DNA of 64,000 nucleotides from Blepharisma stoltei ATCC 30299 (lineage: Eukaryota > Protista > Ciliophora): NCBI GenBank assembly GCA_965603825.1, contig CBFDEM010000044.1, positions 712,617 to 776,616 on the forward strand, read 5' to 3'. Below the pieces are notes generated by a model. The model ran no database searches. It worked only from the letters and a program-made list of their open reading frames with translations, and was not told the DNA's origin. Position 1 is the first letter of the stretch. Each line of letters begins with the position of its first letter. This document shows positions 50,377 through 64,000 of this stretch, in pieces. Both the position numbers and the translations under genes were made by a program.

Positions 50377-51084
50377 ATGTCATCTACCAAAAAAGTAGCT
50401 TCTAAAGCAAATGCTTTCAATTTCCAGAAAATTTTTAGCAAGAAGCGGTCAGAGATAGAGATAAGGAACCCAGGCTCAGCCCGAGCGTCTCCTCCGACTG
50501 GGTCGTCGCTTTCGTCATTTCATCACGACTCAGTCGATCTTCTTGATGAAATTCAGCCACAAACAGCCCACAACCGAAGAACAGCTTTAAACCTACAAAT
50601 TCCTAAAAGAGGCCTTCAGACCCCTAGCCCGAAACACATTCCTACACCTAAAACTAAAGATCTCGTCAGGGTGTATTCAGGATCTGCCCATCACCCAATA
50701 AAGCTAAAACGGAAGCTTAGCCTAAAAGAGACACTAAAGTCAAAGCAGCTGTCTGAGCTCCCAGCAGTCATCAAGCAGAAGTTCGAACTTGAGGCAAAAG
50801 TGACTGATTTGAAGCTAGAGCTACAAAATGCAGTATCTGAACAAAAAAAAATGAAAGAAAGGAGGTCATTGATATTCAAGCTCCAAGAAACCCTTTCAAA
50901 ACTCCTAGAAGAGAATGAAAGGCTTAAAACACAGGTTAGGAAAAACAGCAACGACACACCTGAAGAGCCTAAAAGCAGCATGGCGGTTGGAGATAACATA
51001 GGGCAGAGTATGGAAGAGTTTAAGAATAAACTCATCAAGCTACTAGGGAATCAGCCTGAAGAAAAGGCAAAGAAGTTATATTAA
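50377..51084 (+). CDS. Hypothetical protein, disordered N-terminus plus coiled coil
   Basis: 235-aa ORF, ATG to TAA. Confidence 0.75.
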   Translation: MSSTKKVASKANAFNFQKIFSKKRSEIEIRNPGSARASPPTGSSLSSFHHDSVDLLDEIQPQTAHNRRTALNLQIPKRGLQTPSPKHIPTPKTKDLVRVYSGSAHHPIKLKRKLSLKETLKSKQLSELPAVIKQKFELEAKVTDLKLELQNAVSEQKKMKERRSLIFKLQETLSKLLEENERLKTQVRKNSNDTPEEPKSSMAVGDNIGQSMEEFKNKLIKLLGNQPEEKAKKLY

Positions 51085-51119
51085 TGGCATTTATAGAGTA
51101 TAAAATAAGCTTGTTATTT

Positions 51120-53345
51120 TTAAAGAATCATCAATTTATTTCTCTGGAGTCCTTGGCTTGTAAGCATGGACTCAATCCATCGGTTGAATCCTGATGGCCC
51201 ACAAACCCATGCTCTGGAGATATTGGGTATCTTGACCCACTCCTTCAGTTTTTCTTCGGTCAGCTTTCCTCCGACCCTTTCTTCGTCTAAGTTTATATGC
51301 AAATTCAGAGCCTTTCCTGATTTCTTCTGGGTCGCTTCAAGCAAATCTAATGCAAAGGAATCTTTTTTAGACCTAAAGGTCACGTAAAGGTATAAGCAAA
51401 AATCTGAGGATACAGAGCCGTTCCAGATCATGTAGACCAGATCCAAAAATGGCAAAATTCCTGTTCCAGCTGCGAATCCTGTGCATATTCCTGCTGGCGC
51501 AGATGAGAAGCCAAGGCCAGGTCCTAATGGACCTTTGAGTTTGTATTCACTTCCTGGCTCAAGGTCACACAGATGCCTTGACATTAGGCCATTATCATAT
51601 CTCTTGATATGAAGTTTCAAAGTGTCCGGACTTTTGGATTTCTTATAGATCTTTTTTGTGATTTGGAACCCTTCTTTTCTAGCTTCACGTGCCCAATGAT
51701 GCAAATCAGTCATCATCAAGCTATAATATCGTATCACTTCAGATTTTCCGATCCTTTCCCTAACCCCAAAATGCTTCCCAAGCCACTCGAAACCTTTAGG
51801 AGGGTTCTCAACAGCCCAGTCTTTAGATGTCAGCTCAATGTAAAAAGTCCCTTCTGCAATATTATATTTTCTTACAAGCTCCCAGGTCATATTCCCATAG
51901 TCTAAGCTTTGATCTGAGCTCTTCTTTGTGAGAACACCTGCTGTATAGGCGACTCTATCAATGATTAGGCTGTTTATCAGATTTTTTGCAGGCCGAGAAT
52001 GGTCATAAGAAGCAATGAACCCACTGATACTTGAGCACCCGTTAATATACTTCCCTACATCTTCCCCTATAACTTTACGGATCATATATGCTCCACCAGG
52101 ATGATTTTGAATAAATCCAGAAACATTTAGTAAATATTCATCATAAAAGACACATGACAGATTTTTGGAAACAATGTCATTTAGGATTTCTGTGTGAGTA
52201 GATCCCATCTGATCCATCAATGACTTTTCTAACGCAGGCTTGGCTTTGTTTAGCCGCTTTAGTTTAAAATTCCACTGTAGAATTCTGATCTTATGAGAAA
52301 ATCGATGTCTAATCTCCAATAAGGCAAGCAGCACTACAAGAATTGCGTAGCACGCAAAGACTGCGTTTTTAGCAGTATCGTCACCTTTAATATCCCACCC
52401 ATATTTCAAGTTTATCAGCCCAGGGATAAGAGCGCACCATCCAAGTGCCATATGAACCCTTCTGCATACCCTGAGAATGCTCAAATCTTCTTTAAAAAGC
52501 ATCCACATCTTGGTCATAGCTCCAGTGATAGCTTGTGCTATGACAAAAGCACAAAGAATGAAGCCAATTCTTGAGTGATACCTTTTATTATCACTCAAAT
52601 CATTATAAGCAAGCTCATCCTTTTTATAAATTTCATATACACTCCCACAAGTAAAGCCTAGGACTACATATCCCAGTAGCATGTGGCCGTAGAAAGCTAG
52701 ATAAGTTCACTTAAGATACCTGATTAGCATGATGCACAATGGGGCTAAACAAAGCCACATAACGGTCATCTCATTTCCATGATCTTCATATTCACTTCCA
52801 AATGAGCTTGAAGGCAAGAAATAGGAAGAAGTTTGGTTTAAGCCTATTAGCAAAACTCCTTCTCCGTATGTGCTGTGTTCTTGGAATTTCTGAATATTGC
52901 TTTTTTGTTTATAAGCAAAACAGAAGTTTATGGCTTCGCCAGGCTTGATGACCCAATCGCAGAGGGTGTCACCTGTGTTCAAAAGCCTTGAAATAGAGCC
53001 AAGCATTCTGCCATTATTGAATGAGGAACTTGTCAGGTTCACGTCATCTCGGCAGCCTTTTCCTTTTGCACTGTCCTGTGGTGGAGTGCCATGAGAAGTG
53101 CTATACATGTCCCAGGCATCAAAGTTTCCATTTTGTCTAATAAGGATAATCATATCTGTCTGTTTCATCGATCCATAAAATCCGATTCCGCATCATCCAT
53201 CAAATGAACAATTAAATCCAAACGTAATAGAGTCTCCTGCGATTTGTCATGAAAGAGAGAAATTGGGATCTAGCACAACACTGACTTGTTCTGCAGAAGT
53301 AAAATATATTAGCTGAAGAAGTGTTGAAAAGATAAAAAACCCCAT
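51120..53345 (-). CDS. Signal peptide + DOMON + cytochrome b561 + cytochrome b5 + FNR-type FAD/NAD(P)H reductase fusion (741 aa, 3 in-frame TGA)
   Basis: DOMON: LSW..GWCGIGF.GSMKQTD..FQEH. b561: four His (DHG, GHM, YHS, VHM). b5: HPGG and HS. FNR: RYYS, GLMS, GPLG, AAGTGILPF and CGP. Confidence 0.88.
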
Positions 53346-53747
53346 TTAAATTATGTCAACTTTTTTATACAATTCATTCCAAGTCCAGGATATTATGTTG
53401 ATTCCATTCAAGCTAATAGCTGCAGTTTTCAGTCATAGCAATTAATATTAGTTTGCAATAATAAGACTCAGTGCCTTGAGATAAAAACCTGCAACGGGAA
53501 TTTAAGCTTTTTCATTTTGGATCAGTATATTACCCAGTAAAAAACCATATAATAAATTCACCTGAGCGATATAAACTGCTTTCTTTAAAAAATCGCATAA
53601 ATTTTCGAATAGTAAAATTTTTAATTAAGGTGATATAATATGATATTATCTATTAGAAATTAATTTTAAATTGTTTTTGGAAAATAGATTAAAACTAATC
53701 TCAGCTGCTTAGAATAATTTGGTTTTATCATTTGTATAGATTTGAAC

Positions 53748-54572
53748 TTAGATCTCTTCTGAGGCTTTTTCTGTTTCCTTTAGCTCTTCCTGGCAATAAT
53801 TTACTGAGATTTCGTAATTAATACCATCTCCTTCATATTTAGTATTTATTGGCAGTATATATCCAAGGATACTTTTTCCACAAACCTGCCATATGTTCTT
53901 TTTGCCATCTCCTAAATCATACTTATTATCAAAAGTATTTTCTTGCAATTCCATCACACTCCTGTTATTGACAATAAGTCAACAGTCAAAAGCTGCCAAA
54001 GCTGGCAGCGCTGCAGATAATCCTAACCCACTTAGCATCCCACACATTGTGAAAATTGAAGCTTCTCCTTCATTTACGACAAATAAATGCCCACAGCATG
54101 ATCCTACAAATATTGAACAAATTGATGCATAAACCATAAATTGGCAAACGTACCTGATATTGAAGAACCCAACACAGTTTCCAATAAATGGGCAATGATA
54201 ATCCATTTTGAGGATGCATCTATTACATATATGGCAGTGATGGCATCTGCTAGGTCGCTCCATCTCGCATTTTCCGCAATATTGTTCTTCCTTTATTCTA
54301 TCGTTTTCTTCAAGAGATGATGAGCTGCTGGTAATTTTGAAGTTTGGAGGGATAGTCCCAGGATCTGTAGTAATCGCTTTATAGTAGCTCCAATACATGA
54401 GAAATAGACTTGTATGAAAAGAGATGTACACAATCGAATTAAGTAGGGTGCATTGGACAAGGAAAATATAGCCTTTGTAAAAGAAAAATACAATTGTTCA
54501 AGAGAGGAACACTATAAAAAGAATTGGAAGAGAATAAAGAGCTCTAAGCATGGGACTGTCAATGAACATCAT
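53748..54572 (-). CDS. DHHC-family palmitoyltransferase with a DYHC variant, 2 in-frame TGA
   Basis: Motifs TDPG, CGKCEMERPSRCHHCHICNRCILKMDYHCPFIGNCVG and NKYDLG..KNIWQVCG. Confidence 0.9.
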
Positions 54573-61615: not shown

Positions 61616-64000
61616 GGGTGTTAGGGTGTTAGGGTGTTAGGGTGTTAGGGTGTTAGGGTGTTAGGGTGTTTAGGGTGTTAGGGTGTTAGGGTGTTAGGGT
61701 GTTAGGGTGTTAGGGTGTTAGGGTGTTAGGGTGTTAGGGTGTTAGGGTGTTAGGGTGTTAGGGTGTTAGGGTGTTAGGGTGTTAGGGTGTTAGGGTGTTA
61801 GGGTGTTAGGGTGTTAGGTGTTAGGGTGTTAGGGTGTTAGGGTGTTAGGGTGTTAGGGTGTTAGGGTGTTAGGGTGTTAGGGTGTTAGGGTGTTAGGGTG
61901 TTAGGGTGTTAGGGTGTTAGGGTGTTAGGGTGTTAGGGTGTTAGGGTGTTAGGGTGTTAGGGTGTTAGGGTGTTAGGGTGTTAGGGTGTTAGGGTGTTAG
62001 GGTGTTAGGGTGTTAGGGTGTTAGGGTGTTAGGGTGTTAGGGTGTTAGGGTGTTAGGGTGTTAGGGTGTTAGGGTGTTAGGGTGTTAGGGTGTTAGGGTG
62101 TTAGGGTGTTAGGGTGTTAGGGTGTTAGGGTGTTAGGGTGTTAGGGTGTTAGGGTGTTAGGGTGTTAGGGTGTTAGGGTGTTAGGGTGTTAGGGTGTTAG
62201 GGTGTTAGGGTGTTAGGGTGTTAGGGTGTTAGGGTGTTAGGGTGTTAGGGTGTTAGGGTGTTAGGGTGTTAGGGTGTTAGGGTGTTAGGGTGTTAGGGTG
62301 TTAGGGTGTTAGGGTGTTAGGGTGTTAGGGTGTTAGGGTGTTAGGGTGTTAGGGTGTTAGGGTGTTAGGGTGTTAGGGTGTTAGGGTGTTAGGGTGTTAG
62401 GGTGTTAGGGTGTTAGGGTGTTAGGGTGTTAGGGTGTTAGGTGTTAGGGTGTTAGGGTGTTAGGGTGTTAGGGTGTTAGGGTGTTAGGGTGTTAGGGTGT
62501 TAGGGTGTTAGGGTGTTAGGGTGTTAGGGTGTTAGGGTGTTAGGGTGTTAGGGTGTTAGGGTGTTAGGGTGTTAGGGTGTTAGGGTGTTAGGGTGTTAGG
62601 GTGTTAGGGTGTTAGGGTGTTAGGGTGTTAGGGTGTTAGGGTGTTAGGGTGTTAGGGTGTTAGGGTGTTAGGGTGTTAGGTGTTAGGGTGTTAGGGTGTT
62701 AGGGTGTTAGGGGTTGGTTAGGGTGTTAGGGTGTTAGGGTGTTAGGGTGTTAGGGTGTTAGGGTGTTAGGGTGTTAGGGTGTTAGGGTGTTAGGGTGTTA
62801 GGGTGTTAGGGTGTTAGGGTGTTAGGGTGTTAGGGTGTTAGGGTGTTAGGGTGTTAGGGTGTTAGGGTGTTAGGGTGTTAGGGTGTTAGGGTGTTAGGGT
62901 GTTAGGGTGTTAGGGTGTTAGGGTGTTAGGGTGTTAGGGTGTTAGGGTGTTAGGGTGTTAGGGTGTTAGGGTGTTAGGGTGTTAGGGTGTTAGGGTGTTA
63001 GGGTGTTAGGGTGTTAGGGTGTTAGGGTGTTAGGGTGTTAGGGTGTTAGGGTGTTAGGGTGTTAGGGTGTTAGGGTGTTAGGGTGTTAGGGTGTTAGGGT
63101 GTTAGGGTGTTAGGGTGTTAGGGTGTTAGGGTGTTAGGGTGTTAGGGTGTTAGGGTGTTAGGGTGTTAGGGTGTTAGGGTGTTAGGGTGTTAGGGTGTTA
63201 GGGTGTTAGGGTGTTAGGGTGTTAGGGTGTTAGGGTGTTAGGGTGTTAGGGTGTTAGGGTGTTAGGGTGTTAGGGTGTTAGGGTGTTAGGGTGTTAGGGT
63301 GTTAGGGTGTTAGGGTGTTAGGGTGTTAGGGTGTTAGGGTGTTAGGGTGTTAGGGTGTTAGGGTGTTAGGGTGTTAGGGTGGTTAGGGTGTTAGGGTGTT
63401 AGGGTGTTAGGGTGTTAGGGTGTTAGGGTGTTAGGGTGTTAGGGTGTTAGGGTGTTAGGGGTGTTAGGGTGTTAGGGTGTTAGGGTGTTAGGGTGTTAGG
63501 GTGTTAGGGTGTTAGGGTGTTAGGGTGTTAGGGTGTAGGGTGTTAGGGTGTTAGGGTGTTAGGGTGTTAGGGTGTTAGGGTGTTAGGGTTAGGTGTTAGG
63601 GTGTTAGGGTGTTAGGGGTGTTAGGGTGTTAGGGTGTTAGGGTGTTAGGGTGTTAGGGTGTTAGGGTGTTAGGGTGTTAGGGTGTTAGGGTGTTAGGGTG
63701 TTAGGTGTTAGGGTGTTAGGGTGTTAGGTGTTGGTGTTAGGGTGTTAGGGTGTTAGGGTGTTAGGGTGTTAGGGTGTTAGGGTGTTAGGGTGTTAGGGTG
63801 TTAGGGTGTTAGGGTGTTAGGGTGTTAGGGTGTTAGGAGTGTTAGGGTGTTAGGGTGTTAGGGTGTTAGGGGTGTTTGGGTGTTAGGGTGTTAGGGTGTT
63901 AGGGTGTTAGGGTAGTTAGAGGTGTTAGGGTGTTAGGGGTGTGTTAGGGTGTTAGGGTGTTAGGGTGTTAGGGTGTTAGGGTGTTAGGGTGTTAGGGTGT
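61616..64000 (+). repeat. Telomere, (TGTTAGGG)n = (CCCTAACA)n, about 300 units, running to the window end
   Basis: 8-mer tandem array with the G-rich strand oriented toward the end; this unit is known from heterotrich ciliates. Confidence 0.97.

Follow-up and report, generated by a model that had tools for sequence, protein, structure and literature searches.

A DOMON-b561-b5-FNR fusion protein of the ciliate Blepharisma stoltei, a candidate NAD(P)H-fed transmembrane flavocytochrome

To our knowledge, all b561 proteins known so far depend on a diffusible electron donor, ascorbate, and all known single-chain transmembrane reductases driven by NAD(P)H use the unrelated heme domain of the NOX/FRE group. 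In a 64,000-nucleotide stretch of the genome of Blepharisma stoltei ATCC 30299 (contig CBFDEM010000044.1, positions 712,617 to 776,616; here called the window), a gene on the minus strand encodes a protein of 741 amino acids (aa) in which an N-terminal DOMON domain, a cytochrome b561 core, a cytochrome b5 domain, and an FNR-type reductase follow one another in one polypeptide. We think it probable that this protein is a self-contained, NAD(P)H-fed transmembrane flavocytochrome (type-I-like), which most likely reduces Fe(III)/Cu(II) chelates.

The CYBDOM proteins, which include plant CRR/HYP1 and animal FRRS1/SDR2, share with the Blepharisma protein an exported N-terminal heme DOMON followed by a b561 part with four histidines, and a path that ends at the DOMON heme. 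However, CYBDOM proteins end after b561 and use cytosolic ascorbate, whereas the Blepharisma protein continues with a b5-FNR module of 360 residues. Since a CYBDOM protein has nothing catalytic beyond DOMON-b561, the protein described here is best seen as an extended variant of that group. Judged from the sequence, what sets it apart is the addition of a b5-reductase/b5 module to the CYBDOM plan; the module itself is of a kind known from nitrate reductase and NCB5OR. The plant members CRR/HYP1 are reported to be ferric/cupric reductases (PMC10784544, PMC10784552).

Members of the NOX/FRE group are likewise single chains in which a cytosolic FAD/NAD(P)H module is joined to two stacked transmembrane b hemes, and DOMON-FRE fusions of Naegleria and oomycetes carry an outer DOMON on an FRE protein (PMC3591440). 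Their membrane part, however, is not homologous to that of the Blepharisma protein: in a Pfam scan of the 741-aa protein, Ferric_reduct, FAD_binding_8, and NAD_binding_6 gave no match at an E value of ≤0.1. In contrast to the FAD_binding_8/NAD_binding_6 reductase of NOX/FRE, that of the Blepharisma protein is of the FAD_binding_6/NAD_binding_1 (b5-reductase) type, and an extra heme, that of b5, is interposed between flavin and membrane hemes. The differing membrane domain, the differing reductase type, and the extra b5 indicated that the protein was built independently and is an analogue of NOX/FRE, not a member of that group. An earlier interpretation made from the DNA letters alone (here called the sequence-only reading) had proposed such a convergence, and our results agreed with it, in that the logic is alike and no NOX/FRE domain was found in searches of the protein or of the genome.

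The next-best structural neighbors are the C-terminal half of nitrate reductase and NCB5OR (CYB5R4), in which a b5 domain precedes an FNR-type FAD/NAD(P)H domain and acts as a mobile one-electron shuttle. Both differ from the Blepharisma protein in being soluble and in having neither a membrane part nor a DOMON part; moreover, nitrate reductase passes its electrons to a molybdenum domain, and in NCB5OR a CS domain separates b5 from the reductase. The Pfam scan of the 741-aa protein gave no match to a CS domain, and ∼10 to 15 residues lie between its b5 domain and the barrel of the reductase. Cellobiose dehydrogenase also combines a flavin domain with a Met/His heme-b cytochrome of the DOMON superfamily that gives electrons to an external acceptor, but it is secreted, soluble, and sugar driven, with a GMC-type flavin domain and no passage through a membrane.

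A continuous reading frame with TGA as tryptophan

The minus-strand frame 53345..51120 comprises 741 sense codons, from an ATG at 53345-53343 to a TAA stop at 51122-51120, with no intron. Within it there is no in-frame TAA or TAG and there are exactly three TGA codons (Table 1), so that the standard code splits it into open reading frames (ORFs) 52707..53168 (153 aa) and 51120..52682 (520 aa). These are the two ORFs that the sequence-only reading, in which the strand was not stated, had merged with an N-terminal extension into a protein of 741 aa by reading TGA as tryptophan; the frame, the tryptophans of homologs, and a deposited protein all agree with that merger. Over the window, long ORFs summed to 53,073 nt with TGA as a sense codon versus 39,978 nt with the standard code, and treating TAA or TAG as sense instead gave 43,698 and 40,047 nt, respectively. 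The homologs that carry tryptophan at the TGA positions come from organisms using TGG; the gene itself has 15 TGG and 3 TGA codons for tryptophan. The third TGA, codon 213, falls in the cytosolic RY(L/F)KW loop between membrane helices 1 and 2. The 741-aa read-through is identical to an NCBI/UniRef protein (P0029, 741 aa), and thus public annotation already includes it. The gain of long ORFs in the window, the tryptophans in homologs, the identity to the deposited read-through, and a telomere and genome of the Blepharisma type together supported TGA as a sense codon, and it is read as tryptophan in this gene.

Transcript evidence came from four sequencing runs of one study. In three of these, single contigs ran over the whole ORF (51094-53340, 51096-53340, and 51098-53400), passing through the TGA at 52707 instead of ending there. 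Since these contigs had no joints, the gene has no introns. Neighboring genes lay on separate contigs of other depths, and the intergenic segment 53473-53623 was not covered. Because contigs ended at gene borders and intergenic DNA was left uncovered, we took the runs to be RNA. A transcript of another Blepharisma in MMETSP (P0001/L015) was 93% identical and shared the in-frame TGA of codon 213; upstream of that TGA as well, its frame was open and conserved. Comparison of the two revealed 9 synonymous and 4 nonsynonymous codon differences upstream of TGA 213 and 111 and 36, respectively, downstream of it. The preponderance of synonymous changes on either side indicated selection on one continuous reading frame. 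The gene is real, transcribed, and intron-free.

Domains, cofactor sites, and membrane topology

In the Pfam scan, DOMON (PF03351; 70 bits versus a cut-off of 32.7), Cyt-b5 (PF00173; 26.0 versus 23.7), and FAD_binding_6 (PF00970; 32.7 versus 21.1) all exceeded their cut-offs, and the remaining two parts, b561 and NAD_binding_1, which scored below theirs, were backed by relatives and by profile and fold comparisons. DOMON matched 16 of 19 family members. With the DOMON profile, the best match in the PDB was the cytochrome domain of cellobiose dehydrogenase (1d7c; E value, 6.5e-7), and the alignment put M60 on its heme ligand M65 and H157 on H163. Both residues, which lie in the motifs GSM and FQEH and had been picked as candidate ligands by the sequence-only reading, were invariant in 10 complete DOMONs, as was the cysteine pair C46/C52. 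The structure model has a helix at residues 2 to 14 ahead of the beta domain, and from the amino acid sequence we infer that residues 1 to 18 would be cleaved off as a signal peptide.

Models were available for the 741-aa protein (AlphaFold2; mean predicted local confidence [pLDDT], 78.9) and for a 38%-identical relative, and both had the same layout: a beta-sandwich, five long helices, a poorly ordered basic linker, b5, and the reductase. The helices occupied residues 184 to 210, 215 to 242, 252 to 284, 288 to 315, and 323 to 348. They carry all four b561 histidines (H189, H221, H257, and H298), as had been claimed; each of these was invariant in all 23 aligned sequences and lay near a predicted helix start, with the sides alternating. 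In a comparison of the b561-region profile with the PDB, the two best matches were both b561 proteins, human Dcytb (5zle; E value, 0.008) and Arabidopsis CYB561B (4o6y), and the four histidines aligned with Dcytb H50, H86, H120, and H159. Cytochrome b561 has six helices, whereas five were seen in both AlphaFold2 models; in the full-length relative P0004, the Pfam b561 match began at profile position 2, on the first helix. As modeled, the core is a b561 domain without the canonical helix 1.

The predicted topology is N-out/C-in, with DOMON on the outer and b5-FNR on the cytosolic side. It fits the positive-inside rule, since the numbers of lysine/arginine versus aspartate/glutamate residues were 0/4 before helix 1, 2/0 in loop 1-2, 4/5 in loop 2-3, 5/2 in loop 3-4, 2/3 in loop 4-5, and 10/1 after helix 5. 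The last of these stretches belongs to the tether that leads to b5 (10 lysine/arginine versus 1 aspartate/glutamate in residues 346 to 375), in which pLDDT fell below 50 at residues 362 to 380. Because an odd number of helices follows an exported DOMON, the C-terminal b5 and FNR domains would lie in the cytosol, where the sequence-only reading had also placed them. In this orientation, the outward ends of the helices would carry H189 and H257 and the cytosolic ends H221 and H298, which corresponds to the heme sites of Dcytb. N-glycosylation sequons were ∼3 times denser in the DOMON than in the b5-FNR part of ten relatives, which is weak evidence on topology because the ten sequences are related.

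For b5, profile comparison with the PDB returned cytochrome b5 (2ibj; E value, 1.3e-7) as the best match, with both heme histidines aligned. These are H415 and H449, the pair that had been read from the motifs HPGG and HS, and they were invariant in 23 of 23 sequences. In the reductase, the RxYS motif had invariant R539 and Y541, and its S542 was present in 21 of the 23 sequences; the GTGxxP and CGP motifs were invariant or nearly so in the same alignment (T628, G629, and G716). The profile of the whole family matched cytochrome b5 reductase (2eix; E value, 3e-13), FNRs, and nitrate reductase in the PDB, covering both halves of the reductase. Foldseek with the whole model gave only matches of the FNR/b5-reductase type, the best again being 2eix (template modeling [TM] score, 0.78 by target), apart from a weak listing of the bacterial NOX 8qt6 (root mean square deviation, 12 Å; TM score, 0.42). 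Hence, the three motifs and the fold match to b5 reductase supported the claim of a complete FNR-type reductase. With all heme ligand pairs and the FAD motif present, the protein is expected to hold one FAD and four b-type hemes.

Table 1 Features of the gene and its transcript (positions are those of the window)
Feature	Residues or codon	Positions	Strand	Basis or remarks
RNA-like contig extent		51094..53400	-	Implied 5' untranslated region up to ∼55 nt, 3' untranslated region ∼25 nt
Predicted signal peptide	1-18	53292..53345	-	...TSA before EQ; read from sequence
DOMON, heme-b type	20-180	52806..53288	-	Pfam; profile versus PDB; all-beta model
DOMON ligand codons	M60; H157	53166-53168; 52875-52877	-	Aligned to cellobiose dehydrogenase
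In-frame TGA	33	53247..53249	-	Trp; W in 10/10 aligned homologs, invariant in DOMON alignment
In-frame TGA	51	53193..53195	-	Trp; W in 7 and Y in 3 of 10 homologs
In-frame TGA	213	52707..52709	-	Trp; W in 15/23 homologs; same TGA in Blepharisma sister transcript
Five-helix cytochrome b561 core	184-348	52302..52796	-	Model helices; histidines; profile
b561 histidine codons	H189; H221; H257; H298	52779-52781; 52683-52685; 52575-52577; 52452-52454	-	
Basic cytosolic tether	349-382	52200..52301	-	Helical, low confidence
Cytochrome b5 domain	383-472	51930..52199	-	Pfam; profile versus PDB
b5 ligand codons	H415 (HPGG); H449	52101-52103; 51999-52001	-	
FAD-binding beta-barrel	∼480-612	51510..51908	-	R539-x-Y541-S542; Pfam; Foldseek
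NAD(P)H-binding domain	∼613-741	51123..51509	-	G627-T628-G629-x-x-P632; C715-G716-P717

Proposed electron path and alternatives

In the path that we propose, NAD(P)H would reduce the FAD of the cytosolic b5-reductase/FNR module, and the tethered b5 would carry single electrons from the FAD to the cytosol-side heme of b561, a shuttling that may be likened to that in nitrate reductase and NCB5OR. From there the electron would cross to the b561 heme on the outer side of the membrane and move on to the DOMON heme, which would pass it to a one-electron acceptor outside the cell or in a vacuole. Chelates of Fe(III) or Cu(II) are the most probable acceptors, judged from the plant CYBDOM proteins CRR/HYP1 and from Dcytb. 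The fused b5-reductase module would thereby replace cytosolic ascorbate, the donor of ordinary b561 proteins. The sequence-only reading had put forward the same self-contained chain from NAD(P)H through FAD, b5, and b561 to DOMON; its single coding unit, its cofactor sites, and its topology were borne out, while the electron flow between the domains, the coenzyme, and the acceptor, together with the membrane of residence, are what we infer.

The genomic setting was examined in the 41.46-Mb assembly (64 contigs) by six-frame searches with hidden Markov models (HMMs) behind a loose prefilter. Neither Ferric_reduct (PF01794) nor NAD_binding_6 (PF08030) had a match in this search, and the same was true of the ALO domain (GULO/GLDH). 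All 8 b561 matches in the genome fell within fusion genes, i.e., no stand-alone b561 was found in the six frames. In published surveys, 18 Alveolata proteomes were reported to be without ferric-reductase domains (PMC3591440), and Paramecium to be without GULO and GLDH (PMC4396506). This suggests why the fusion exists: lacking NOX/FRE and unable to make ascorbate, the lineage would have linked b561 directly to pyridine nucleotide. On a more tentative level, ciliates may possibly have evolved a third kind of self-sufficient transmembrane reductase, with four hemes and one flavin and grown to a dozen copies in Blepharisma, as their main export route for reducing power to the surface or food vacuole, where it would serve iron/copper uptake or the production of oxidants.

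Several points weigh against the proposed path. On the 741-aa protein, the Pfam scores of Cytochrom_B561 (PF03188; 20.8 bits versus a cut-off of 23) and NAD_binding_1 (PF00175; 14.5 bits versus 22) remained below threshold. The six-frame genome search scored the b561 stretch of the window at 24.3 bits, over the cut-off of 23, and at an E value of ≤0.01 the Pfam b561 domain matched 17 of 19 relatives (best, 1.3e-9) and NAD_binding_1 matched 5 of 19 (best, 4.6e-6). Between its two heme histidines, the b5 domain has a 10-residue insertion relative to 2ibj. A complex prediction for b561 (residues 181 to 352 plus hemes) and b5 (residues 383 to 470) scored 0.01, which speaks neither for nor against their docking. 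Both the signal peptide and the membrane in which the protein would reside are presumed, the RNA kind of the sequencing runs is a guess, and the assembled contigs give neither strand nor exact ends. The absence of NOX/FRE and GULO was seen in loose-prefilter six-frame HMM searches, which are no proof of absence. Finally, the family is so far known from sequences, transcripts, and models.

The same wire might end on O2, which would make the protein a NOX-like superoxide generator at the food vacuole or cell surface. We consider this unlikely, and equally so the uses that such a generator could have in prey killing or digestion, signaling, or defense. A functional substitute would be plausible in a genome without a match to a NOX/FRE domain, and an NAD(P)H-FAD module that feeds stacked transmembrane hemes parallels NOX, to which the Foldseek match noted above was weak. 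However, the terminal DOMON heme, with its Met/His pair, would be six-coordinate, as in cellobiose dehydrogenase and plant AIR12/CYBDOM, and DOMON-heme proteins of this kind are outer-sphere donors to metals or to partners and not dedicated O2 reductases.

Alternatively, the DOMON heme at the end of the wire could feed a partner enzyme that is secreted or luminal, for example a copper monooxygenase resembling the lytic polysaccharide monooxygenases (LPMOs) or a peroxidase, in the way that the cytochrome of cellobiose dehydrogenase feeds LPMOs. That cytochrome domain is the best solved relative of the DOMON profile, and the many paralogs, some of them with several DOMONs, could reflect different partners. 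An ESM Atlas neighbor with a score of 0.77, a cluster of ∼1,490-aa proteins with An_peroxidase (animal-type heme peroxidase), Cyt-b5, and DOMON, may be taken as a lead only. Yet no partner gene is apparent beside the locus, where the adjacent genes code for a coiled-coil and a DHHC-type protein, and this possibility seems rather improbable to us. The characterized DOMON-b561 proteins, moreover, are reported to reduce Fe(III)/Cu(II) (PMC10784544, PMC10784552).

It is more improbable still that the fusion serves co-localization only, with b5-FNR supplying cytosolic or endoplasmic reticulum (ER) acceptors (desaturases, P450s), DOMON-b561 drawing on another donor, and no transfer from b5 to b561. 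Systems of b5 and b5 reductase normally serve ER enzymes, and the docking prediction for b5 and b561 supported neither side. In contrast, at least 11 paralogs and the members from different ciliate classes keep the same order of the four domains, and two invariant basic residues, R209 and K212, lie on the cytosolic face beside the histidine of the inner heme. Moreover, since no ascorbate-synthesis enzyme and no stand-alone b561 were matched in the genome, the b561 hemes would be left without an obvious donor if b5 did not supply them.

Termination at the TGA at 52707 or at the two upstream of it, which would leave separate short products or a pseudogene, was rejected as hardly credible, because, although the standard code yields ORFs of 153 and 520 aa and a standard-code ORF caller truncated the MMETSP homolog likewise, homologs that use TGG have tryptophan at all three positions, the sister strain shows purifying selection on both sides of the TGA, the gain in ORF length shows that the window as a whole behaves as if TGA were sense, the first b561 helix with H189 would be severed from the other three histidines, and public annotation reads through.

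A role in the redox chemistry of pigments had been among the uses suggested by the sequence-only reading. We rejected it as the main role, and a pigment-specific function is unlikely, because the family extends beyond heterotrichs to Tetrahymena, Paramecium, and Euplotes.

If the proposed path holds true, evolution would have independently solved the problem addressed by NOX/FRE proteins, by wiring a b561 to NAD(P)H through b5 reductase and b5. This would then explain how the phylum achieves metal reduction at the surface or in vacuoles, or oxidant production, without NOX/FRE or ascorbate synthesis. The protein would offer a compact model, with five cofactors, for multistep electron transfer across a membrane, and orthologs in the tractable Tetrahymena and Paramecium make the hypothesis testable.

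A ciliate-wide family and the surroundings of the gene

The family to which the protein belongs is conserved, ciliate-wide, and apparently uncharacterized; it is not a one-off. The B. stoltei assembly contained at least 11 further copies with 32 to 51% identity, including a tandem pair on contig 24 and one broken copy. A profile search against 1.84 billion representatives gave 278 matches at an E value of <1e-30, many of them over the full profile at 640 to 920 aa, with members in seven ciliate genera. Among the named members were those of Stentor coeruleus (OMJ93868.1), Climacostomum virens, Protocruzia adherens, Tetrahymena utriculariae (KAL4484234.1), Paramecium sonneborni (CAD8124193.1), and Euplotes crassus (CAI2385738.1). 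All of these are labeled hypothetical or bear automatic domain names, and Pfam confirmed the architecture in them. The ESM Atlas neighbor cluster was 100% eukaryotic, with Ciliophora as the commonest phylum.

Literature searches for the DOMON-b561-b5-FNR architecture returned nothing, although the 2007 DOMON survey by Iyer and Aravind, which may list such architectures, was outside their reach. The sequence-only reading had not recognized the architecture as a characterized one, and no paper describing it turned up. Its suggestion of novelty therefore stands in this respect, but the gene is not singular: it belongs to a multicopy, ciliate-wide family whose members are already in databases as "hypothetical."

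Several paralogs differed from the gene in the window. The closest of them (51% identity; G000:C51:544506-548117, L002 plus upstream sequence) has four DOMON domains in tandem ahead of it, each broken by one TAG; it resembles a multi-DOMON form of the same protein, interrupted by tiny introns or stops. Another copy on the same contig (L012; G000:C51:555379-556965) matched in three pieces with TAA and TAG between them and is probably either the decayed remains of a paralog or a gene interrupted by several tiny introns. Most of the loci L003 to L009 have one TAG within the DOMON region and an ORF restart at a conserved "MFGCDM"-like site. This pattern suggests a short intron; the gene in the window has no such feature, and its contigs are jointless. 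In other protists, two giant proteins, P0058 from Arcella intermedia (2,531 aa) and P0063 (4,632 aa), matched the DOMON-b561 part 12 to 21 times, in long multi-DOMON arrays.

Next to the gene, a convergent gene at 50377-51104 on the plus strand encodes a coiled-coil-like protein of 235 aa. Its contigs end ∼10 nt inside the 3' end of those of the fusion gene, and one run joins both into a single contig; the two genes meet or overlap at their 3' ends. Upstream, at 53979-54431 on the minus strand, lies a DHHC-type zinc-finger (palmitoyltransferase-like) segment in which DYHC replaces DHHC and which has its own RNA-like contig. From 61617 to 64000, the window consists of ∼2.4 kb of telomeric repeat, TGTTAGGG (equivalent to CCCTAACA). 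Since this repeat closes the window, the gene lies ∼8 kb from a chromosome end.

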